A DNA stretch of 63,023 nt, filler included, from Hyphochytrium catenoides (GCA_900088475.1; 4 parts of 4 records of this genome joined end to end with filler, not necessarily neighbours in it); one strand, 5' to 3'. Counted from the whole stretch's first letter, positions 16,530-33,599 are shown. Notes: a model not told the origin generated them from the sequence alone. Made by a program: numbers and translations.

Positions 16530-18129
16530 GAGAGAAGAGAGAGAGAGAGAGAGAGACAAAGAGAAAGAGAGAAAGAGAAAGAGAGAAAGAGAAAGAGAGA
16601 GAGAGGGAAGAGGGGACAGTGAGAGGGAAAGGAAGGGGAGAGAGACAATTGCTGTTTGCACGCTAATGGAAGGAATGGGACGTCTCGACAAACCGCAGAC
16701 GGACACACAAAGAAAGGCAAGAAGACAGAGAAGGGAAAGTAGGAGAGAAGGATGAAGTGGGACACGGAAAGAGCAGAGAAAGAGACACAACAATTGAATG
16801 ATAGTGAGTCAGACAATGAGAAAGAGAGATACAGAGACAGAAACGGAGAATCAAGAGGAGAGAGACACAGGCAGAGGGGAGAGACATATAAGAGAGAGAG
16901 AGTGACAGAGAGAAAGAGAGAGAGCAAGGGCCAACCATCCTGAGGTTAGGGCGGTTAAAAGAGAAAAGCGAGATGATCCAAGCAGAGGAGAGAAAGAAAC
17001 AAAGAGAGGAGAACCTTGTGCCGTAGCTGAACCGAGGCAAAGCTTGTCTTTCAGTGCAGCTGGCAAGTTTCTTGGTGCTGCAGGGATGACTGTCAGTGAC
17101 GCCGCGACGGAGAGGAAGAACACTTTGTCGTCCTGTCTTTCTCTTACCTCTGGCCCGACAGGTGTCCTGCGCACGGAGTCCAGAGGTCTCTGCAGCCTGA
17201 GAGAGAGAGAAGCTATCAAGAGATAAGAGAGAGAGACTTGCAAGCACTGCCCAGTAGAAGAGTAGGCACCATGGGCCACGCAGGCTCCTCTCCGTCATTT
17301 TCTTCCACTAGAGCCACGGACTTGCTAGCAAGAAAGAAGAGTCAGAGAACAGTGCTCATCTGCTGCACCCGAGATGGAGCTTGGCGTTCGACCATCCTAA
17401 CACCGCGCTTCGTAGCTTCCTTGAGCTAGAAGCATGGACTCTGGGAAAGTGGTCAAGGCAGAACGCGCGATGGGGACAGGGAGAGAGATGGAGAGAGCTA
17501 GGGCGAAAGAGAAGATATTAATGGACAAAGCAAGAGACATGAAGATGGCGAGAGAGAGAGGGAGAGAGAGTAGAGAGAGAAGACAGTAGGCCACAGCTGC
17601 GAGGGAGGATGAGAAGAGAAAGCGAAGAGAGAGAGAGACAGAGAGAGGAAAGAGAGAGAGAGAGAGCCACAGAGAGAGAGAGAGAGAGAGAGAGAAGAGA
17701 GAGGAAGAGGAGAGAGAGAGAGAGAGACACAGAGAGAGTATGAGAGAGAGAGAGAGCTCCTGGAGCAAAATCCCCACTTCATGACGCTGAGGAAACACGA
17801 AGAGTTGTCACTTCCTTTCGCAAGATTGATTATTTGGATCAAAAGAGCGATAAATCAGACTAAATGATTACAGGCACTGATTCTACTTGTTGAAGTTAAC
17901 TATGTAAAATATATTTTAATTCTTACACTTTCCGGTTTACTTATTGACAGCTGGAAATCATAGTTTACACATTGCCTTCCCCGTCATGCAGAAGACTTAC
18001 GTTCGGAGAAGCCAGTACTGGAGATTGCGTCAAATATGCCGTATTATTGTTGAAGTGTGAAATATGACCTAGCTAAAGGGCCGTGATCTAATCAGAAGGC
18101 TGTGAAGGAGGTGTCAAAGGTTGATGGAA

Positions 18130-18372
18130 AGAGACACAGAGAAAGAGAGACAGAGAGAGAGACAGAGAGAGAGAGAGAAAGAGACAGAGAGGCAGAGACA
18201 GAGAGAGAGACAGAGAGAGAGAAAGAGACAGAGAGAGAGACAGAGAGAGAGACAGAGGGAGAGAGAGAGAGAGAGAGAGACAGAGACGGAGAGAGAGAGA
18301 GAGACACACACAGAGAGAGAGAGACAGAGACAGAGACGGAGAGAGAGAGAGTGAAAGAGAAGGAGAGAGGAG
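18130..18372. repeat. compound (GA)n/(GACAGA)n microsatellite
   Basis: Visible dinucleotide/hexanucleotide purine tract. Confidence 0.9.
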
Positions 18373-18792
18373 GGAGGGGGCGGCAGAGTGGGAGGAAGTC
18401 CGAGATTGCATCTACAGAGCGGATGGATAGCTGCACGAAGGGAAGCGGAAGAAAGAGAGAGAAAGCTTACAAGAAAGAGTGAAAGAGAGCGACCGCACCA
18501 GAGAGAGAACAAAAGCTGGACTGGTGAAGCGGCATTTGCGCCAACTCTGAGGCCAGCAGGAGAAGGACACGCAGCCAATTGCTGCCTTCAGCGAGTCACG
18601 CTTCCCATCCGTCCATTCCTCTGCGTCCTATCCTCTCTCTCCGTTGCCTCCTCAGTTTTGTCGGTGCCCTGCCTTAGGAAAAGGTTATTTTTCACACTTC
18701 AGCCGCCCGGTTCATCTCAGCTGCTGGGCCCAGGGAAAGGCCCGAGGGAATGCTCTGACGGGCTGGTAAAGGCGCTCTACCGACCAGGGCAA

Positions 18793-20113: not shown

Positions 20114-22665
20114 CTATTTCTGACTCCTAAGATTTGATACAGCTTTAGCCACTGCATCTTCTGTGAGCTCTTCCCTCTTGTCAACAAAGATATCCCCGTG
20201 ATAGGGTCTCAGGTGGCTGTGAATGGCTCCACTGAGTGTCCCCAGCTGCCCTTTAGCAGTTACGGGGACAGTCTCGGGCTGCCAGTGGATGAGACAGAAC
20301 TTGATGGTTCTGGACTGATCAATGACCTCCACTGTCCGTAGGAGGGCATATTGGATCTGCCCATCGATCAAACTGTCACGGAGCTCCTGCACTCCGCCTA
20401 AGACAGAGAGACAAGAAAAGATAGGAAAGGGAGCCAACGATACGGAGAGGATTGACATCGTGCAGAAGAAGGGGTCGTTAGTACGAGGTGGACGAGGGAA
20501 GGAACAGTGGTTAATAAGCTGGAGCTTACCGGAACCCTTCCCTGCAATCCGCATAGTCCTCCCTTCAAAGGCCACTGCAACCCAATCGGTGGGATCATTG
20601 GCATTTCTGACAGCCCCAACTGCCTGACGGAGCTCCTCTTCTTCTGCCACCACCAGCCCATCCTGGTGTTTCGCATTTCCTAGTGACGAGGATGGTGGGG
20701 CTGCAGAGGCAGCTCTCAGCCTCGCCGTTCCATCTGGCAATGTAGACGATGGGGCTGCAGAGGCTGCTCTCGTTCTTCCTTCTGACGCTGCGGAAAGCGT
20801 GAAAGAGCTCCGGAAGTCCCCTGTCATGCCCTCTACCACGCTGGACCGTGTCCCTGTGACGGCTCCAACCTCATCTGCCACCACACCCTCATCTAGTTCG
20901 TCCTTAGATGATATGTGGAAGTCGACGTGGTATGGTCGGAAGAGGCCAGTGACGGCTCCTTTATGTGTCGTCATGGCCGCCTTCATCATCGGTGAGATGC
21001 CCTCAGGTTGCCAGACCACAAAGCCGAACTTGACGGTTCTGGACTTGTCATACTGCTCAATCGTACGGAAAAAGCCATAGTTTACATTTCCCACTTCGAA
21101 GGATTGCACCATCTCTGTCACAGTGCCTGTGCCTGAGGGAGGAGCCATTTACAATCTTAAAAGGAAAATGGTAGGATAAGAGGAACGTAAGGAATCAGAC
21201 CCAGAGGAGAAGAAGAACTAACGGATTGTCAGGCGGAATGAGAGAATGGTTTGCAAGGGTCAGAGCATTTTTCTTCACCCTCTTTCTTCGGCTGTTTGCT
21301 AGCTATCAAAGCGCTTCTTACCCTTTCCATGGAGCTCCAGCTCAGACTTGCTCTTGTACCTGATCACCACCCACGAGCTCTCGTCACGATCGTTCCTGAT
21401 AGAGGCAATTGTGTTCTTGATATCTTCCTCGTTGACGAAGCTGAGGGTGGGTGCAGTTTTAAAGCTTCCTTGCCCTATTTACCATTAGCAGTAGAAGCAT
21501 CAGCTAACAGAAGTAAGTTTAGGAAACAACGAGGAAGATGTTGGCTTGAAGAGAAGAAGTCAGATCTGGTGAAGAATCGGATTGCCATGCACCTTCGACT
21601 TTGAGAAGAGGAGAAAGAAGGAGTGAATGGAGGGAGAGATAGGATAAGACAGCAGTAACCCACGTACGTCTGACAGGTGGTCTAGATTCCGAGGAAGATT
21701 GACCCGCGGAGCTCTTGGGGCTGGTGCGTCCCGAAGATGATCTGAATATGCTCTGCACAGGTGATCCCATTGACGGGCGCGCAGGAGAGGGCGCGGAAGC
21801 ACCACCACCTGTGGTAGCTGTGCGCATGGTTACTCTGTCCAGCAGCTTGGAGACAGCTTCTGCAGACACTTCCTCCAGGCTCTCGACCTAGGAAAGAGGA
21901 AATGTGTGAGGATGCGTCATCTATGGCCGAGGAATGTTCACGAGGCACGAGAAAGAAAGATATAGAGGTCGAGGTTGCGAACCGAGGTGAACGATAGATG
22001 AACGATTGTCAGATGGCCAATCCTTGTTTTCTTTGCATCTAGGGAGAGGGAAAGGGATCACGCTGGAGGGAGGAGAGCGATAAAGAATATATGGCTCGGG
22101 GTGACAATGAGAGCGGGTCCTGGTCCTTACTTCTAGATCTGCATGGTAAGGCTTGAACAAATTCTTGATTTGCCCCTCGAAGATACCCATCTTCATCTTT
22201 CGGAAGATCGGAATGCCCTCAGGCCGCCAGTACACTGCCAAACCGAGGCGTTAGAGCGGAGTGAGAAGAGACAAAGCGAGCTGGAGAAAGAGAGAGAGAG
22301 GCAACAGGGAGAGGGAGACCTACCAAACACGAACTTCACTGTGTCTGTTGATATGTTCCCAACCTTCTCAAAGGTAAAGCGTTCGCGCAATAGTCCGTAG
22401 CAGACATCTTTAGCAAGAAGGTGGGACTTCAGCTCCTCCAGCCCTCCAGATCCTGTCCCAAGCAGCTTCAAACTATCACGATCTTCATACCCGACCAGGA
22501 CCCTACTCGAAGAAGGAAGAAGGGAGGACCAGAAGGAGGCCGGGTCGGTGAGCTCATTTCTCCAGATCTTTCTCAAGCAACTGGAGGTTACCAGTTGGCG
22601 TCAGACTTATCCTCATGCACTGACGCGATGGCTGAGGTGATATCGTCAGCGATCTTGACGCTCAT
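20114..22665 (-). CDS. actin-binding protein with three tandem coactosin-like ADF-H domains
   Basis: Three repeats of (I/V)..(V/I)(R/H).D....W(V)...Y/F....L...G.G.GG/T..E(L/M)......YG/ALLR....TVKF....W.PE..P..K......G......F/LRPYH.D; ATG at 22665, stop at 20114. Confidence 0.9.
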
Positions 22666-23178: not shown

Positions 23179-23614
23179 CCTCCTCTTTCTATGGATGGAT
23201 CTTCGTGAGTTCTGATTCCTCTTCCTCCTCTCTCCTCCTCCCTCCCTCCCTCCTTCCTCACTTTCTCCTCTTCAACATTCCCGCCGAACCTTTCATTGAG
23301 GAAATGTTTCCAATGGGCGTGGGAGCTGCCTACTCTAAACCTCCTACCACGCTTTGTTAGTTCCGTGAAACCTTCAGAATTTCTCAAATGAGAACGAACC
23401 ACTCAGCGTAGAATCTTAACGGATGATTACTGAAAGGCGGTTATCGTTATGTGCTTGAGGAGGGTGTGACGTCCCAGTCCTCCCCTCCGCGCATCATCAC
23501 ATCAAGAAGCGGTATATCACGACGGTTCGAGTTCACCTGCAGCTTCAACCTTCTCTTTTCCTCTCTCTCTCTCTCTCTCTCTCGCTCTCTTTCTATCTAT
23601 CTATCTATCTCTCC

Positions 23615-23665
<51 letters not shown>

Positions 23666-23885
23666 CCCCCTCTCTCTCTTTCTCTCTCTCTCTCGCTCTC
23701 TCTCGCTCTCTCGCTTTCTCTCGCTCTCTCTATCTCTATCTCTCTATCTCTCCCTCTCTATCTCCCTCTCTCCCTCCCTCCCTTTCTCTCTCTCTCTATC
23801 TTCCTCTCTCTCTCTTTCTCTCTCTTTCTCTCTATCTATCTTTCTATCCTTTATCTATCTCTCTTTTCGCTTCTCCCCCTTTAGT
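23030..23885. repeat. (CT)n and (ATCT)n microsatellite arrays between divergent genes
   Basis: Long CT tracts at ~23030-23185 and ~23550-23880. Confidence 0.9.
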
Positions 23886-24146
23886 TTGTTATTGTGGTTC
23901 TCACTTCTAAAACCTTTTCTTTCGGCATTCTCAGCCCTACGAGTGCTCCCTCGTACCGGTAGCGTACGGTCAAAGAGACGGACGATCCAGTCGGCGCTCC
24001 CTGTTTCCCTGCCGCTGTTATCCTTCCTTCTCCCTCACCTCCTCCCTCTCGCTCTTCGCCTCTGTACCGGACTATCGCTCCTCTCCTAGAGACCACGTGC
24101 ATATCGCGGGCCCCAACGAAGACGCAGCGCTACTGACCCAGGGAGA

Positions 24147-27100
24147 ATGCCGCGCATCACGAAGGAGCTGCTTCGGAAGAGGGCGGAGCACAATGAAGGG
24201 ATTATCCACACGCTCGAAGAGATTTCTCTGCATCAGGTCAACAACTTTGACCATACAAAGCTTCTATCAGCAGAGTAGCTTCACTCTTAACACTGTCCAA
24301 TCTGTAGGAGGAGCTCGAGTCTATTGAGCTGATCGGCACTCTGTGCCGCAAGCTTCGGATCTTGTACCTGCAGAACAACATCATAGAGAAGATAGAAGGG
24401 CTGCACCATCTGAAGGAGCTTCGGTACCTCAACCTTGCCCTGAACAATGTTAAGAAGATTGAAGGCCTCAGGTCCTCTGCTTACGCTCCAGACACTCTTT
24501 CTCACCAAAGTGGAGCCTGTCCTTCGGCCTTCTCTTCCTAGCTAAAGCGTCCCTCATACTCTTGCTTCTCTCTCTCCCTCTCTCTCTCTCTCGCTCGCTC
24601 GCTCGCTCTCTCACACTGGCATTGTTCTGCGTGGCGCTCTTGCTGATGCCAAATGGCGCTTTTCTCTCTCTGTCATCCTCTCTCCTCCCTCTCACCCTTC
24701 CGGCAGCTCTTGCGAGTTCCTTGAGAAGTTAGACCTGACCGTGAACTTTATAGACTTTGACACCTTAGAAGAGAGCATCGTAAGGACTCTGAACCTCGGC
24801 AATCTGCCGTTTCTGCTCTCCTTCCCTATCAAAGAATTGCCGTCTACACTTCTTGACACTGGACGCCACCTCTCTCTCTCTCCCGACTCCCCTGTCGTCG
24901 GTTCGGTGGCTCTGTTTCATGGTCCTTAGCTCTCTTGGGATACCTCGGGCATATGTGCCTTTCTCCTCTCTCTCTCTTTGCCCCATCTGCCTTTCGCCTC
25001 TCGTAGGCCAGAGCTTTCTGTCTACTTCCGGCGTATGGTCCTTGCTCCTCACTCTCTCCCTCATCTTCCTTCATCCCTTAAAGGAAGTATAACTAACCGC
25101 AGAACCTGGTCTGACTCTCTAGGACCATCTGAAGCCGCTGCGGCACTTGAGAGAGCTCTATCTTTTAGGAAATCCTGCCCAAGTGAACTGGGAGGACGGC
25201 TTCAATGACTTTGTCATCCACTCTCTCCCTCAGCTGCAGTCCTTGGACGGCAAGGAGATCACACGAACCGCGCGCATAGTTGCTGCAAGGCGCTTTGAAG
25301 AGCTACAGGTCATCTCCATCTTCAGTTCTCTTTCTATTGGTCTCTTTAAAAGATAATACTTGTCCTGTCTCTTCCTAGCCAGTTATCTTTGCCGCAATGC
25401 CTTTCTAGTTTCTCCTGGATCTCCTGCACCTCTCTGTGTCTCTGCGGACCCCCGTGGTCAACTCTCTCTCTTTATTATCACGCTCCTCGTAGTCATTTTG
25501 CCTCTCTCTCCCTCTGGTCTTTTGTCTTGGTGGAACCGCCTTCTCCATGCACGTCACAGCCCTGTAAAGACTGACATCGATCTCTCCGGCCTTAGAGTTA
25601 TGTCCGCAGGCGAAGGGATGAGCTCCTCGCAGCCAAACAGAGTGAGGACAAGCCACGAAAAGAGCGCATAGGAGAAGAAGATGACAAGGTTCTCTCTCAA
25701 CTGAACGACGGCAGCTATGATATCTCCCCCGAGAGCGAGAGCTCAACTGCCCAGGCTCAAGAGAAGGAAGACACGGTGCCTCACACGCCTGCAGCTAGGA
25801 GAGGTGAGAGAGACATTGAGTCATGGGAAAGCGACCTCAGCGCTGGGGCCTTTAACCTGTATTTCTGGCAGAAATGTACATGGAAATGGCAGAGCAGAAA
25901 GCGGAGAAAGAGAGAACAGAAAGGGAACGGCTTCCAAAAGAGAGAGACTATGAGAAGGAGCACGTCGGCCGCGTTGCCCAGGAGAGGTAAGCATCAACCA
26001 CCTTCTTGCATCGCCAAGAGTGAATATAATAATACCGCCCTTCGTCTTCCCCAAGAGAGAAAGAGGCGAACGGCGAGATCCGGCAATGTAATGAGGGAAA
26101 GGCAAGTACATCTTTATGGGCGAACTGTTCAAGAACATGCTTCATACCCTACTCCCACCTGTCCCTTCCATTCCCTCTTGATCCCTCACCACCGCCGCCC
26201 CCGCTTCTCTCTCCGGTCTGCCAGGTTCCTCTTCTACACGGATTTTCGACTTTCTCCTGCAGTAGCATGTGTCTCTGCCTCGGTCCATGGTTCTCTCTTT
26301 CGGCTAACGACTTAACCTTTCCTGTCCACCCTGATGTTATCATGCGCTGTCTCCCTCTGTTTGTTCCTTTTCCAGTGGGACTTCAGTCTGGACGAAGACG
26401 AGCTTCCCGGTTGCATTGTTCTCGAAGTTGACGTCCCTAAGTTCTTGGACACATCGCTGGTGGACGTGGACCTGCATCCGACCTACGTCTCCATTGTCAT
26501 CAAAGGGAAGCTACTACGGCTCAGGCACATGGAGGAGGTAGGCTGGCTACGTAGGCTTTAGACAGCAGTTGATAAAAGAGAGTGTTAGTTTATTCGGAGA
26601 CTGCCTGTGACCTAGCACTGGTAGGACCGATCTTTGTATAGCTTATAGAGTTTGAGCTCCAGAGAAAGGGAAGTGTGCATATGCAAGAAGAGAAGTGATA
26701 AGCACATGAATTTGGAAAGGCAAGAGCGCTACGTCCCATTTAGATAGCTAATGACTTTGAGGCAGGTGGAGGTCCACTCTTCACGGTGTCTGCGAGTGAA
26801 GGGCAGTGGGAAGCTCCGGCTAGAGATGACTAAGGCAAGCAAGCGGCCCTCCGTGCAGCCTAAGCAACAGCAGGAGGGCGGGACCACCCAGACTAGAGTT
26901 CCAGCGAAACAGTGGACAAGAGGGAGAGAGAAGGTACAACCCCCCTAAATCGAGTGATTGTCCCTTTCTCTGTGTCTTTTCCCACTCACTAGCGGTCTTG
27001 CTTTTAGCGATCAACCAAGCCAGGAGACGGGAACGGCCGGGTCCGACTGCTGGAGAAGGAAAATAAGCTTGGAGATGAGGTTAGCAGGCCGTCATTCTCA

Positions 27101-27459: not shown

Positions 27460-30400
27460 CTAATGCCCGTCGGATATTCTGCGCAATAAGCCTGACAGCA
27501 TTTCTCGGGTCATCTTCGTCTTCTCTGAGTCCCAGTTATCGCCGCCTGAACAAGAATACCGAGTTGCCTCTGAGTGGTCAAGAATCAAAAGCAACAAAGG
27601 TGTTGCCTTCTTTTCTTACCTCTAAATCCTGCGAGCAGCCTGTACTGCAGCTCTTCTTCAGAGATAGACTCTGCAATGTTGACCAGGGAGCCGATGACTG
27701 TCGTGATAAAGTTTCCGTCCGTCTTGTCCGGCCGCACCATCTTAAAGCGCCAAACCCCTATTTCCCAGGAACTAAGTGAGACGTCGGGCATGCAGTAGAA
27801 GAGAGTCTCGATGGGGAGGACCCGAAAGCGAAGACAGAATGGATAGAGAGATGGCAGAGCAAAGAAAAGAGGCAGACTAGATATGACAGAACCCTCGAAG
27901 AGTGGAAAGGTGGCAGTATGAGCGGAAGGCAGAGAGCTGATCGGAGAAGAAGACGTGCTTGATTTTCACCTCACCTGACGATGCATCAAACTCCAACTCA
28001 GCAATGACGGACCGCAGACGTTTGGTGCGCAGTTCTCTGAACAGTCGCTCCTTGTCTTCTCTTCCTAATGCAATCTATAGCCAAGCCGCCAGGCAAGTGA
28101 CCATTAGGATTGAGGACCAGAGACGGGCTAAGGAATAAAGCAAAGAGAGAGACGTCCAAGAGCTCACCTGCTTGCTCAGGTCCAGTTCGTCTCCTTGCAC
28201 GGGGCACGAGACTTTGAGGTCCCCTCCGCCATCTGGCTCCACTTTGAAGTCAATCGTGATCAGGTCCGCCCATTTCCATTTTAAATAGTCTGGGATGACA
28301 AAGGTCTAGTAAGACTTTGGTGCTTCAGACCTCGGTCTGCTCCTCATACAGCATTTTGGATACATCCTCATCTCTTGGCGTAGCTCCTTGCCTCGGGGTA
28401 TCGACTCATCCAACCTCTCCTCTCTCCTGTATTTTCCCGGATCTACATGATGCCTTTACCACTCTACTCTCTACGCCCTCTTCAATATGGTTGTCCTAAT
28501 GTCTTCCGTCTTTTCTCTCTCTCTCTGTGACCATCGTCCCATCTCAGTTCAAAGCACTCACTTCTATCCGTTCCCACTTGGTACTTTGTGTTGGGACAAA
28601 AAATGATCCCGTCAGTGTAGTGCTTTCGCTTAGAATCTTCATATATTCGGTGCAGCGCACCCTCTGAGCGGTGTTGCGTGACCCTTGTGACGATAGAATA
28701 GCCGAGTCAGATTGTGGCAGGAGAAAGGCAAAAGTTTTCTCCACAGGTGGCTCCTCCACTCACTTTCTGAAGATCTCTCTGATGTCCCTCACTTTGTACC
28801 AGCTCTTTCTGTTCATTGGAATAACCACGCTGCGCGGTAGCTGCCGATGATGGAAGCCGGACTCATAAGGTCCGCTAAAGAGATGAACAAGTGTTACCTT
28901 GCCAGTTTCTAGACCGACAAGCAGGGAGACAGAGACAGAGGGAAATGAGAGAGAACGAGAATGACCGCCATCATATCCTAAGGGGAGGGCTCTGCACCCT
29001 ATATCCTCGTGAAGGTGTAAAACGGGTAGACGACAAAGTGAACATGAAGGGAGTAGAAAAGGCCTCACCTCGGCTCAAAGAGCTGATAGAGCTGGATGAG
29101 GCGATGATGAAAGTTGTGTCCTGTCAGTTTGGCTGCTTCAGCTGTCCCCAGAGCCAGAGCGTCAAAGATCATCAACATCGGCCGCTCCAGCTTCAAATTA
29201 AACTGGGAAAGCAGCGAGCAGGTTAAGGAAAGCCCCATCCGCGCCTTGAATCTCCCTGGTTTTTCCTTCACGTGACACAAGTCCCTACAAACGCCCCGCC
29301 CTTTGAAGCTCTCTATCTGGTGCGTACCACAAACTCTCCATCCAGCACAGTTCCTTCTTTGAAGATGAGAGAGAGCATTTCGATTCCTGTAGGACAGAGA
29401 ATATGTGAAATGGTCCGAAGCTGTGGAACAAGTTAATCTCGCTACGTCTCCTCTCACACCTTCCCTACCTGGCGCGGAATAAAGGACATATTTCCTATCT
29501 ACGAGCACTGCTTTTCCTCCGGTCACGACCAAAAAGTATCGCACCCCATCTGTCTTCTCAGAAACAAAATATCCATGTTTCTCCTTTTTGCGGGGAGAGA
29601 GGTGAAGAACGTAAGTCTTGGCATTCTCTCATTCAACTACTTCCACACTTTCCCATTGCACTCTATGATGTCTACTGGCCAGTGCACCTGTAGGTCATCA
29701 AATAGCAGTGATCGAATGGCTTTTGGATACCCTTTCTCTCGCTGACCCTCGGCACTCCACACTCTTGTCCAGATTTAACGTCTTTTAGACGTCAAAGCCC
29801 CGCTAGGCTGGAGATGTCTCCCGTCTTATGACACATCGGCCGGCTTACCTTTATGATCATGGCGATGTGCTGCTTAGCAAAACCCGCGGGCATCGTGCCT
29901 GGGAATCTATTACCGGAGAACTCACGCTGAGAGAAACAGCTTCGCACGGTGGCTTGTGCCTGCAGTGCAAGAGCTCACCATTAGTCCTCCCGTGTGTCTT
30001 TTAGTTTATGAAACAGCCGATGCGATCTGCCACCTTTACATCGCCAGACTATACCACTTTCCCCGTCAAAACTCTCTCACTGCAAGCAGCTAACCACACG
30101 TCACTCCCCTTGCCCTCTCTTTACTGCTAGGTCCGTCATCAGCATATTGGCCGAAAGCGTCCTCCGCGCTGCCTTTAATCTCATCCCACTTCATATCTCC
30201 TTGGCATCGGTTTCGAAAGGCGAGGACTACGCCGCGGACCTCTAGCGTACCTCATGCAGCAGCCTATCATCCACTATCCGAACAGGCTCCCAGCCCTACC
30301 GCCAGCAGCGGGATGAACCGTCAGGAAGGAAGAGCTGAATGGGCTGCTAGGAAAGTTAAGGAAAAGAAAGGATCTCCACACAGCACCTGACGAAGGAGAA

Positions 30401-32324
30401 GCCAGAAAAGACAGAAGCCAGCCAGGAGAGCAACCAGATAGAGATGGCCAGCATTGAGAAGAGAGAAGACAGGGAGGGCCGAGGAATAGGTTAAGGATAA
30501 GAGCAAGCAGGAGAAATCTAACCTCTGGCATGAAGAGGCAGAGCTTCTGCCAAATTTCCGATGCAATCTCCAGCGCTCCTACCCTCGATGCCGCCTCATC
30601 GTTCTCTGTCACCCATTTTCGAGTCTTTGACTCCTCTAGTTCCGCCTAAGACAGCAGAACACGGGTTCAGGCGACCAGTCAAGGGTGTACGAAAGACAGC
30701 AATACACTGATAAATATTTGGAGCTAAGTCTAGAGTGTATCAAATGACAAAGAGTAGATAACAGGCCAATGAAATGGGATGCAGAGCCTTGGTCAACGCA
30801 ACGCCAAAGGCCAGGAAAAGCGCCAGAACAGCGAAAGGAAGAACGCGAAAGCAGCACTTACCTCCACCTCAAAGTTTAGCTGTTCCAGTTCTGTGTCGCT
30901 CTTCTGAGAGCGGACTTTGGTAAAGTCAAGCTGACACGATCGGAGAGATAAATGGATGAGCGAGAAGATAATGTCGCGGAAGGTCAGAGAGGGATTGAGA
31001 GAGACTAACAGGACGGAGAATAGAAAGACGATGGACGAGGGAGCAAGAGATATTCCAGATGAGAGAGTCAGCATTACAAGGGAGGCTTCAAGAAAGGTGA
31101 GCTCACCCGGCAGGCGGCGGCTGGATCTATGAAGCTTTTGCGGTCCTTGAAGCGAGAGTCAAGATTTTGCGCTGCAGATTCAAAGCTTTGTCCGCTGTTC
31201 AGCGGGATCGGCGGCTCCTCTACTGAGACAGATACGCGGACGTCGTAGGGACAGGAAGGGAGAAAGAGATTCAAGTTTGCAATCTTTCTCTTCCGCTGCT
31301 GGAATGGAGCACTAAGCGGACGACCACTGGCCTCCAACTCCCGGACTAGGCGGCGACGATTGCTGTCTGTGAAGACTTCCTGGTCAGAGAGAGCGAGAGA
31401 AAGACCGTGAGCTCAGGAGCCAGAGGATATCGCCAGATGAAAAGGTTGAAAGTGTTTACTGGTGAATAATGAAGGGACAGCGAAGCAATGGGCGCTCTTC
31501 CGCAGGGAGCCGCGATGTCTCAAAAGCACTACGCGGCCATCAGAAGGGGTAAGAGAGAAAGCACAGCGGGATGGCACGCAGTAAGAGAGAGCACGAGCGA
31601 GGGTTGAGAAGGTCCTATGACCTGTTTTTCTGTTGAGACTCTCCACCTCCTCTCCTGCGCCTTCTCAAGATAGGAGGCGAAGTGTTGAGGCTGAACCCCA
31701 GCGTCAAACACGGCTCCCAGGTTCCGCATTTCCTCCTCAGGGAGCGGAAGGGAAGCGGGTTGTCCGGGGTGATTTGACCCGAAGCGGCCGCGCTCTGACT
31801 CGTCGCAGATCCGTCCCAGTCGAGCCTCGATCTCCAGCGCACCATGACGGAACTCTTCCGCCAGTGTCCGCCGGAGAGACAGGAGGAAGCCTGCAATGGC
31901 AACGTCCGCGGGCCTGTAGAAAACGGAAGAGAGAGAGTGTCTGTTAGAAAGAGGCAGACAGGGAAGAGAGGACAGAGTAGACACTGACAACAAGCGGAAT
32001 AGAGCCAAAGGTGGGCGAAGGAAGATAGAAGAGATCCCGACACCAAAGGAACTGCGGATTCCAGAAGCAGCAGTGCCAGTTGTCAAAGAAGAAGGCAGAA
32101 GGGAGAGGCTGATGAAGAAGAAGGCAGAAGGGGGAAAAGAGAGCTGGATTCGGGACTCGTCTCTCTTACACATTTTTATCTGTGGAAATGACGCTCTGGC
32201 TCCGGTCCACTCGCTGGCGCTTGGCAGCCCCGCCTGTGAGGCCGCCAGCGCCGTGACCAGGCAGCCCTTGAAGGGAGCGAGTAATCGCAAGGGAATCTCC
32301 GGCGATGGTGTCGAGGAAACTCAT
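27460..32324 (-). CDS. bifunctional mRNA capping enzyme: Cet1-like TTM/CYTH RNA 5'-triphosphatase fused to mRNA guanylyltransferase
   Basis: TTM motifs LEIEARLG, KRKIANLNLFLPSCPYDVRVSVSVE, RFKDRKSF, LDFTKV, FEVE|AE. GTase motifs FPGTMP, I (EKTDGVR), III (LDGE), IIIa (IFDAL), IV (TDGIIFCP), V (LKWK), VI (RPDK). Phase-compatible GT-AG exons link the two halves without a stop. Confidence 0.88.
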
Positions 32325-32729
32325 ATCTTGACTTCTTTCTTTCTCACTCTCTCTTTCTCTCTTTCTCTTTTTTATACTTTCAATATATTTCTCTTGCTTC
32401 CCCTCTCCCTTCTGCCTTGTAGCGCTCTCCGGTCCTGGTTTCTCTTCTACGCACGTCTTCCTTCTCCGAGCCAGGCTCTCTTCTTGCCCCTCGTCAACAG
32501 TTGGGCTGCCGCTGCCGCTGCTGAGCACTTATAAGACGAGGGAAAGGAGCTGCGGGCAGGAGGAGGCGATCTTCTAGGCGTAAAATGTATCTCCTCTTCG
32601 GGAGCGGTGGCAGTCGGGGGAGAGGAGGCAGCGCCTCATCTCACTTCTATCTAGTATCAATGCCGCAAAATCGAGTACTCGACTTTTATGCCCTTGATAG
32701 AGGTTCTGCATGCGGCAACTCTCTCCCTC

Positions 32730-32758
32730 ACTGTCTCTCTCTCTCCTCTCCCTCTCCG

Positions 32759-32828
<70 letters not shown>

Positions 32829-32960
32829 CTCTCGCTCTCTCGCTCCCGCTCTCTCTCTCCTGCTCTCTCTCACTCTCTCTCGCGCGCGCTCTCTCTCTCT
32901 CTCACACGCTCTCTCACGCTCTCTCTCTCTCTCCCTCCCTCTTTTCTCTCTCTCCCGCTT
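32730..32960. repeat. (CT)n microsatellite
   Basis: Visible CT tract at the boundary between gene-dense and gene-poor regions. Confidence 0.9.
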
Positions 32961-33599
32961 TCTCTATCTTCAGTTCCTTCTCGCTCTTCCCTTCCCTTCT
33001 GGCATCGTCTCACTGATCCCCCTGGAGCTCAGTATACACCCCTCTCCCCCCCTACACAAACCAGAGAGCCCCCAGGAAGGTAGGGAGGAAGTAGTGTACG
33101 AAGTCTTTCACCGCCACCTCCTCCATCCTCAGAACGCCCGGCCGCCCCGCGGCAGCCCGCAGCTCTGCCATCAAAGCAGAGAAGAGTTGGAGGTGCTTCG
33201 GCAGCTTTTTTCTGGCATTTGGTCTCCTAGAAAGGTGCACTGTCGATTGTGCATCATCTCCTTAAGTGGCATGGCAACATGTTGGCTCAGCCAGATCCAG
33301 AGGAGGACAACAACAATTCAAGAGAAAAAGAGAAAGAAAGCGTTCGTCCTACAACAAGCAGCTACTACGGAGGAGGATAGAAGAAGAGCAGTGAGGTAAC
33401 GAGTATTGTTGAGAGGAGACCACCACCAAAAGGCGTCGTCGAGGGCGGCGTCGTCTTCAGACAAAAGTAAAGAAACAAAAGCAAAATGTGCTGAAGCTAA
33501 CACCTCAATTTGCTGGCTTCCTTTATCACGGACTATCTGCCAAACCACGTACATTTCTGGCAGTTCCACTTTGTGACCGAATGGCTCGTCAATGACGTG

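Follow-up and report, generated by a model that had tools for sequence, protein, structure and literature searches.

Are the triphosphatase and guanylyltransferase steps of mRNA capping united on a single polypeptide in the hyphochytrid Hyphochytrium catenoides, and, if so, is that polypeptide the product of the host's own gene? The question is raised by positions 27460-32324 of a 63,023-nucleotide stretch of its genome (GCA_900088475.1), here called the window, in which 4 parts of 4 records are joined end to end with filler (counted in the length) and are not necessarily neighbours in the genome. Along its minus strand, the locus carries motifs of a TTM-type RNA triphosphatase (RTPase) followed by those of an mRNA guanylyltransferase (GTase). 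Two cellular layouts have been described, a TTM RTPase separate from the GTase in microbial eukaryotes and a cysteine phosphatase fused to the GTase in animals and plants (PMC12215270, PMC2904801). On the sequence evidence presented below, we consider the locus, with a probability of about 0.88, to be a single fused cellular gene that would encode a bifunctional TTM-GTase capping enzyme, and a vertically inherited orthologue of proteins from oomycetes.

One gene probably spans both capping domains

The locus lies on the 29-kb contig C863 of a eukaryotic assembly of 61.0 Mb in 4759 contigs. A first-pass translation of minus-strand positions 33000-27000 in three frames gave a series of short open segments with capping motifs, and splice sites placed from the DNA yield a model of 16 exons (minus strand, 32324-27460), running from an ATG at 32324 to a TAG stop at 27462-27460, with consistent phases, no internal stops and a product of 684 amino acids. 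All 15 introns (74-291 bp) have GT-AG borders; the mean intron length of the published H. catenoides assembly is 208 bp (PMC5795050). A preliminary description, made from the DNA without further analysis, had placed a cellular, intron-rich gene at 27460-32324, which is exactly the ATG-to-TAG extent of the model, and its cellular character is borne out by the 15 introns and by neighbouring genes of cellular type. Searches of Pfam and the PDB were made with single exons or with orthologues, and the spliced 684-residue model was used to check phases, to align the protein with its orthologues and to build the tree.

The three profiles for which the preliminary description had suggested a scan were all matched by minus-strand open frames. 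PF02940 (mRNA_triPase) scored 35.5 bits (E 1.1e-08) on 31077-31412, exceeding its cut-off of 24 bits, and PF01331 (mRNA_cap_enzyme; 28.2 bits on 29068-29628) and PF03919 (mRNA_cap_C; 24.4 bits on 27588-27965), each on a single open segment, fell just below their whole-protein cut-offs of 29.6 and 26.5 bits, as expected because the queries were fragments. With the full-length orthologue P0005, PF02940 reached 76.4 bits over profile positions 8-221 and the GTase profile 83.2 bits. Both glutamate-rich TTM strands (motif A, ExExx.G; motif C, ExExE) and all six GTase motifs (I, III, IIIa, IV, V and VI, in order) are present on the one strand, as had been described, and the key GTase residues are invariant in the family alignment A1, as are the motif C glutamates E256, E258 and E260 (P0005 numbering); motif A was not counted as invariant, since two rows of the alignment are without that region. 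In sequence searches of the PDB, the triphosphatase exon retrieved yeast Cet1 and Schizosaccharomyces pombe Pct1, the C-terminal exon retrieved S. pombe Pce1, the GTase motif-I frame gave only a weak match to the Paramecium bursaria chlorella virus 1 (PBCV-1) enzyme and the exon-2 open frame gave no match. No DSPc cysteine-phosphatase family was matched by the N-terminal exons in Pfam, PF02940 being matched instead. The Pfam scan also found no PF03291 methyltransferase (MTase) at the locus, in agreement with the earlier claim that such a domain is lacking; the PF03291 matches of the genome lie on contigs C229, C3379 and C3865.

That the two domains belong to one gene, as the preliminary description had proposed, is supported by the uniqueness of the locus, by the lack of an in-frame start for the GTase half, by end-to-end alignment with orthologues and by the coding of the fusion in a single exon of Pythium. 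In profile searches this was the only locus in the 61-Mb genome that matched PF02940 or PF01331, and the fused protein of Pythium found only contig C863. Between the end of the TTM domain and the first GTase exon stand two introns of 227 and 291 bp, ordinary for this gene. Upstream of exons 6, 7 and 8 there is no in-frame ATG: the frame before exon 6 meets a stop codon at once, and the open frames before exons 7 and 8 extend for 5 and 15 codons, respectively, with no methionine. When oomycete fused proteins were compared with the window by tblastn, they aligned in 8-9 collinear segments along the exons, with summed scores of ~370-400 bits, far beyond chance. The spliced model aligns with these proteins end to end, linker included, at 34-36% identity over ~645 residues, and the alignment crosses the junction through the helix 'LW....FMP', the 'GWE' linker and 'FPGTMPxGF'. 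In the genomic DNA of Pythium oligandrum, a single exon without interruption codes for residues 1-406, from the TTM domain in its entirety through the linker to GTase motifs I and III, so the fusion there is independent of splice prediction. A complete fused open reading frame (ORF) is also present in a Trinity transcript of another organism (P0035/P0059).

The exons across the junction were quoted in the preliminary description, and all three are present, with phase 0 and GT-AG borders. Exon 5 (30645-30523) completes motif C (AELE) and continues into the C-terminal helix of the TTM domain, whose last residues, IWQKLCLFMPE, align with 'LW....FMP' of the oomycete proteins; exon 6 (30295-30251), a 45-nucleotide linker exon encoding GWEPVRIVDDRLLHE, aligns with the 'GWE' linker of the orthologues; and exon 7 (29959-29849), supported by tblastn, begins the GTase nucleotidyltransferase domain (RFPGTMPAGFAKQHI). 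Exons 5 and 6 are phase 0 at both ends.

Catalytic motifs along the exons

Exon 1 (32170-32324, all exons on the minus strand) begins with the ATG at 32324 and encodes an N-terminal tail with KRQR, a possible nuclear localisation signal, before a GTAAGA donor; its junction with exon 2 falls inside a block, 'S.APD.AIA.FL', that is conserved in the oomycete proteins. Exon 2 (31622-31913), consistent in phase and 33-34% identical in its region to P0005, P0024 and P0018 by tblastn, carries the first metal-binding strand of the TTM domain, LEIEARLG (motif A; 31837-31814 in the motif search, as for all motif positions given here), and the helices that follow. The TTM core strands QQRKRK, YDVRVSVSVEE (31247-31215) and RFKDRKSF (31154-31131) lie in exon 3 (31107-31379), where PF02940 was matched, and exon 4 (30862-30930) adds LDFTKV (30930-30913) and the start of motif C (NFEVE), which is completed by AELE across the junction of exons 4 and 5 (30876-30634).

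In the GTase half, exon 8 (29469-29583), at 50-57% identity to the fused orthologues by tblastn and within the PF01331 match, holds motif I (SEKTDGVRY, 29562-29536), in which Lys366 of KTDG is the predicted GMP-accepting lysine. Motif III (TVLDGEFV, 29351-29328) follows in exon 9 (29328-29386) and motif IIIa (LMIFDAL, 29175-29155) in exon 10 (29069-29202), and exon 11 (28764-28874) encodes the stretch from motif IIIa to motif IV. Motif IV (TDGIIFCP, 28616-28593) is in exon 12 (28562-28683), whose acceptor at 28683 is less certain than any other border in the model, and motif V (YLKWKW, 28287-28270) is in exon 13 (28168-28289) together with the start of the OB domain, which continues through exon 14 (27975-28074). 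Exon 15 (27620-27757), where PF03919 was matched and identity to the oomycete proteins is 54-65% by tblastn, contains motif VI within WRFKMVRPDK (FKMVRPDK, 27746-27723) and the conserved AESISEEELQYR helix; exon 16 (27460-27545) encodes a C-terminal helix and the TAG stop, and the orthologues end at the same position.

The same fusion occurs throughout the oomycetes sampled

Just six proteins were retrieved when the TTM exon was searched with HMMER, and one of these was a 670-residue protein of Pythium oligandrum with PF02940, PF01331 and PF03919. Word searches from this protein and from an alignment of diverse members then recovered a fused architecture of 625-682 residues in all 12 of the oomycete genera returned (Pythium, Globisporangium, Phytophthora, Peronosclerospora, Bremia, Hyaloperonospora, Lagenidium, Albugo, Aphanomyces, Achlya, Saprolegnia and Thraustotheca), and several further assemblies carry the fused protein as well. 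A feature search of the ESM Atlas with the Pythium protein gave clusters of 63 and 104 members, of which 98% carry PF01331 and 78-86% carry PF02940, with Bacillariophyta as the commonest recorded phylum; in a structure search, the 104-member cluster matched across residues 78-663, with template modelling (TM) scores of 0.52 by query and 0.50 by match. These clusters, which are leads rather than alignments, suggest a fused enzyme in diatoms too; the architecture would then be widespread among stramenopiles. The same resource returned no usable match for the single TTM exon.

The guess in the preliminary description that other stramenopiles share this architecture therefore proved correct, through the 12 oomycete genera and the same Pfam pair in diatom-dominated clusters. 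The novelty that it had assumed is smaller, since dozens of such proteins are already deposited and automatically annotated (as 'mRNA 5'-phosphatase' in UniRef), so that the locus is probably the hyphochytrid orthologue of a known protein group and not a new kind. In the literature covered, a full-text search found no paper describing or testing a cellular TTM-GTase fusion, which is not proof of absence; the fused family as a whole looks unstudied.

Two other capping-related architectures were seen among the proteins retrieved. A further GTase-domain protein, ~605 residues long, lacking a TTM domain and sometimes carrying zf-CCCH, appears to be present in oomycetes beside the fused one (P0067; ESM Atlas cluster), and no counterpart of it was found in the H. 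catenoides genome at E<=0.01. In a protein of 1185 residues from NCBI (P0064), an FCP1/NIF-like phosphatase domain (PF03031) is joined to a GTase and a cap N7-methyltransferase, an unusual capping architecture.

Predicted structure of the Pythium orthologue

An AlphaFold2 model of the Pythium orthologue had a mean predicted local distance difference test score of 83 and a predicted TM-score of 0.78. In Foldseek, the TTM barrel modelled for this orthologue matched Pct1 (4pn0) and Cet1 (1d8h) with TM-scores by target of 0.66-0.68, and the GTase domain matched Cgt1, Pce1, the human enzyme and that of PBCV-1; the probability was 1.0 for the fungal Cet1/Pct1- and Cgt1/Pce1-type matches. Vaccinia D1 was the only PDB chain to cover both domains, at ~10% identity and a root-mean-square deviation of ~15 Å, which indicates the same domain order with a different packing.

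Origin of the fusion

In a tree of the GTase domain, 16/16 fused proteins formed one group (Shimodaira-Hasegawa-like approximate likelihood ratio test, SH-aLRT, 86), and the H. catenoides protein fell in a clade with the oomycetes (SH-aLRT 97) and outside the oomycete clade itself (99), the placement expected for a sister lineage under vertical inheritance. Searched against the PDB, the family profile found Cgt1 (1p16) and Pce1 (4pz6) as the best matches of the GTase half (1e-42), followed by the human and PBCV-1 enzymes, and Cet1 (3e-16), Pct1 and entry 6l7v as those of the TTM half (~1e-15 to 1e-16); no poxvirus, African swine fever virus (ASFV) or mimivirus chain was matched at E<0.01. Plasmodium GTases were also found by this profile, and both halves are closer to fungal and protozoan enzymes than to those of poxviruses or ASFV. 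Most likely, then, the fusion was inherited vertically and predates the split of oomycetes and hyphochytrids, and its age, as inferred from these comparisons, possibly reaches back to much of the stramenopiles. The preliminary description had left the choice between an independent fusion and a virus-related one; a single old cellular fusion, passed on vertically, is the favoured reading and a recent viral origin is unlikely, with some room for a deep link to giant viruses.

One enzyme bears on that link. P0069, a giant-virus trifunctional enzyme on a metagenomic contig of densely packed, uninterrupted ORFs that includes an intein-bearing Rpb2, can be aligned collinearly with the family across the domain junction, starting in the second half of the TTM domain and continuing over the GTase (hhalign 99.4%, E 5.5e-22).

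Alternative explanations

Several observations count against reading the locus as one fused gene. The gene model is a prediction from DNA and from comparison with orthologues; its linker is ~7 residues shorter than that of the oomycete proteins, and the donors after exon 2 (GTCATA) and exon 5 (GTTAGA) are weak. Introns 5 and 6 hold ATG-to-GT combinations that could provide an alternative, GTase-only first exon (for example, ATG 30184 with donor 30124), and retention of intron 5 (30522-30296) would leave the frame open for another 82 codons, as far as a TAG that ends at 30274, and would give a TTM-only product. In the EukProt Trinity set of another organism, a TTM-only protein of 278 residues, corresponding to the first 270 residues (P0058), stands beside fused isoforms of 649 and 714 residues, so alternative splicing or intron retention may yield a triphosphatase-only product. 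A measured enzyme activity was not found, in the literature searched, for any member of the fused family. A rival reading is that of two adjacent genes on the same strand, a TTM gene ending at ~30523-30277 and a GTase gene transcribed and translated independently from a promoter and start within the ~570-bp gap. In its favour, the gap has a small number of ATG-to-GT combinations from which in-frame splicing to exon 7 would be possible, and separate genes are the rule in described protists, including Toxoplasma with TgCet and TgCeg (PMC12215270), such that the arrangement would fit that of fungi, Plasmodium and Toxoplasma. Yet the gap consists of just two ordinary introns around a linker exon, and this exon and the end of exon 5 can be aligned with the linker conserved in the orthologues; the frames leading into exons 6-8 hold no ATG, and the orthologues are fused in a single exon of Pythium and in a transcript of another organism, which makes two genes very unlikely. 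Less credible than any other reading is a pseudogene, that is, a decaying or non-functional copy of a capping enzyme: the frame is intact over 16 exons, every catalytic motif is kept and this is the sole genomic copy of both essential domains.

The single fused gene could also have come from a virus, and the evidence differs according to the age of such an event. A recent insertion from a nucleocytoplasmic large DNA virus (NCLDV), by which the gene would descend from a viral TTM-GTase-MTase enzyme and not be the host's own capping enzyme, gains some colour from the domain order, which is that of vaccinia D1 over both domains, from the collinearity with P0069 in its viral contig context, from the GTase tree, where the fused family joins long-branch sequences including P0069 (SH-aLRT 95), and from the NCLDV-like insertions reported on large scaffolds of the H. 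catenoides assembly (PMC5795050). Against it, the gene has 15 spliceosomal introns and no MTase domain, it lies among cellular genes (a 7tm_3 receptor, Cofilin_ADF and a DNAAF11-like CS domain), the genome has no other GTase or TTM locus, its tree position mirrors the expected kinship of the organism to oomycetes, and its family profile, which matches fungal GTases (1e-42) and Cet1 (3e-16), reached no chain from a poxvirus, ASFV or mimivirus at E<0.01. The genome does contain an ASFV-like capping ORF, described below, but its likeness to the fused family is remote: 168 columns aligned in hhalign (94.8%) with 21% identity, and the Pythium fused protein gave no significant BLASTP match to it. 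This remoteness makes a recent viral origin of the fused gene unlikely in its own right; altogether, we judge recent insertion to be very improbable. More room is left for a shared ancestry at greater depth by the junction-spanning alignment with P0069 and the common branch in the GTase tree, although the P0069-branch rows are long and were retrieved with the family's own profile, so that their placement is unsure. We therefore raise, tentatively and as a minority view, that the fusion could be a third, ancient cellular architecture sharing a direct origin with the giant-virus TTM-GTase module, either through viral capture and addition of an MTase or through early domestication in stramenopiles.

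Other capping loci and neighbouring features

On contig C229 (159988-162609, minus strand; L013:2489-5110), an intronless ORF of 873 residues matches, over its C-terminal 288 residues, the MTase of ASFV NP868R (PDB 7d8u, E 1.5e-52) and PF03291, and it is adjoined by an ATP-dependent ligase-like ORF of 496 residues (L013:5313-6803); the ORF has the appearance of a host-genome insertion encoding an asfarvirus-like trifunctional capping enzyme. On contig C3379 (10590-10975, minus strand), two adjacent exons match PF03291 positions 10-57 and 59-93 and are likely part of a separate cellular cap N7-methyltransferase gene.

An exon at 26334-26561 (plus strand), which lies a short way downstream of the capping gene and in the opposite orientation, encodes a DNAAF11-like CS domain (PF23602, 66.7 bits) and belongs to a gene for a cilium/flagellum assembly factor. 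Further features of the window are a 344-residue ORF at 20114-21148 (minus strand) with two Cofilin/ADF domains (PF00241, 108 bits), for which a word search found one distant homologue (30% identity) and whose CT-rich, in-frame middle stretch resembles an unspliced intron, and a single ORF of 618 residues at 39555-41411 (plus strand) with a class-C G-protein-coupled receptor domain (7tm_3, PF00003, 76.7 bits) and serine-rich tails. Long CT/GA-rich tracts (32585-33083, 16530-18580 and 23451-24089), which read as SLSLSL or ERERER in several frames, flank the genes and give many spurious ORFs. Such tracts and a GC content of ~51% recall a coccidian, a reading rejected since Toxoplasma has its TTM and GTase genes at different loci and the fused protein has its nearest relatives in oomycetes.

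Discussion

By analogy with Cet1-type enzymes, the TTM domain (~residues 55-300) would remove the gamma-phosphate from the 5' triphosphate of nascent pre-mRNA in a metal-dependent step, with the divalent metal held by the glutamates of LEIEARLG and NFEVEAELE. The GTase (~residues 305-684), if it works as Ceg1-type enzymes do, would form a Lys366-GMP intermediate at KTDG of motif I and pass the GMP to the diphosphate end, and N7-methylation would be left to a separate gene. The covalent link would take the place of the non-covalent Cet1-Ceg1 partnership of yeast, and a single chain would carry the two activities to RNA polymerase II. We infer these catalytic activities, the coupling to the polymerase and the oligomeric state of the protein from its likeness to the enzymes named.

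The closest counterparts are the oomycete fused proteins (for example, Pythium oligandrum TMW60323.1/A0A8K1CCX5, Phytophthora infestans PITG_18416 and Saprolegnia parasitica SPRG_20256), which have the same PF02940-PF01331-PF03919 order and resemble the H. catenoides protein in length class (625-682 residues), conserved linker and tree group. They differ in having ~2 introns in Pythium against 15 in H. catenoides, whose protein comes from a lineage outside the oomycetes and has the shorter linker. Taken half by half, the best matches in sequence and structure are fungal (Cet1-Ceg1 of Saccharomyces cerevisiae, Pct1/Pce1 of S. pombe), with the same motifs and presumably the same chemistry; in fungi, however, the halves are two polypeptides that associate non-covalently or are recruited separately, whereas in H. 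catenoides the C-terminus of the TTM domain runs into the N-terminus of the GTase on one chain. Apicomplexans likewise combine a TTM RTPase with a classical GTase, but from separate genes (Toxoplasma TgCet/TgCeg, Plasmodium Prt1/Pgt1; PMC12215270).

Single chains with the TTM domain before the GTase are also found in vaccinia D1, ASFV NP868R, mimivirus R382 and P0069. The viral trifunctional enzymes differ in their C-terminal N7-MTase, which is absent from the H. catenoides gene (stop at 27460), and the latter, with its 15 introns and cellular neighbours, is unlike the intronless type set in a viral neighbourhood. The bifunctional enzymes of metazoa, plants and Trichomonas, too, have an N-terminal RTPase fused to a homologous GTase (human 3s24), but their RTPase is a metal-independent cysteine phosphatase of the DSPc fold, unrelated to the TTM barrel (PMC2904801).

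Taken alone, the H. catenoides locus is of modest value, adding a hyphochytrid orthologue and dating the fusion before the oomycete-hyphochytrid split. For structural work on how the capping steps are coupled, the fused protein offers a natural one-chain counterpart of yeast Cet1-Ceg1. Since TTM-type triphosphatases are absent from host plants and animals, the fused enzyme is a plausible selective target in oomycete pathogens, an argument already made for the fungal and trypanosome enzymes (PMC4791841). A TTM-GTase fusion that alone serves hyphochytrids and oomycetes, and probably diatoms, as capping enzyme would constitute a third cellular layout, and with it capping architecture becomes less useful as a simple marker of evolution.

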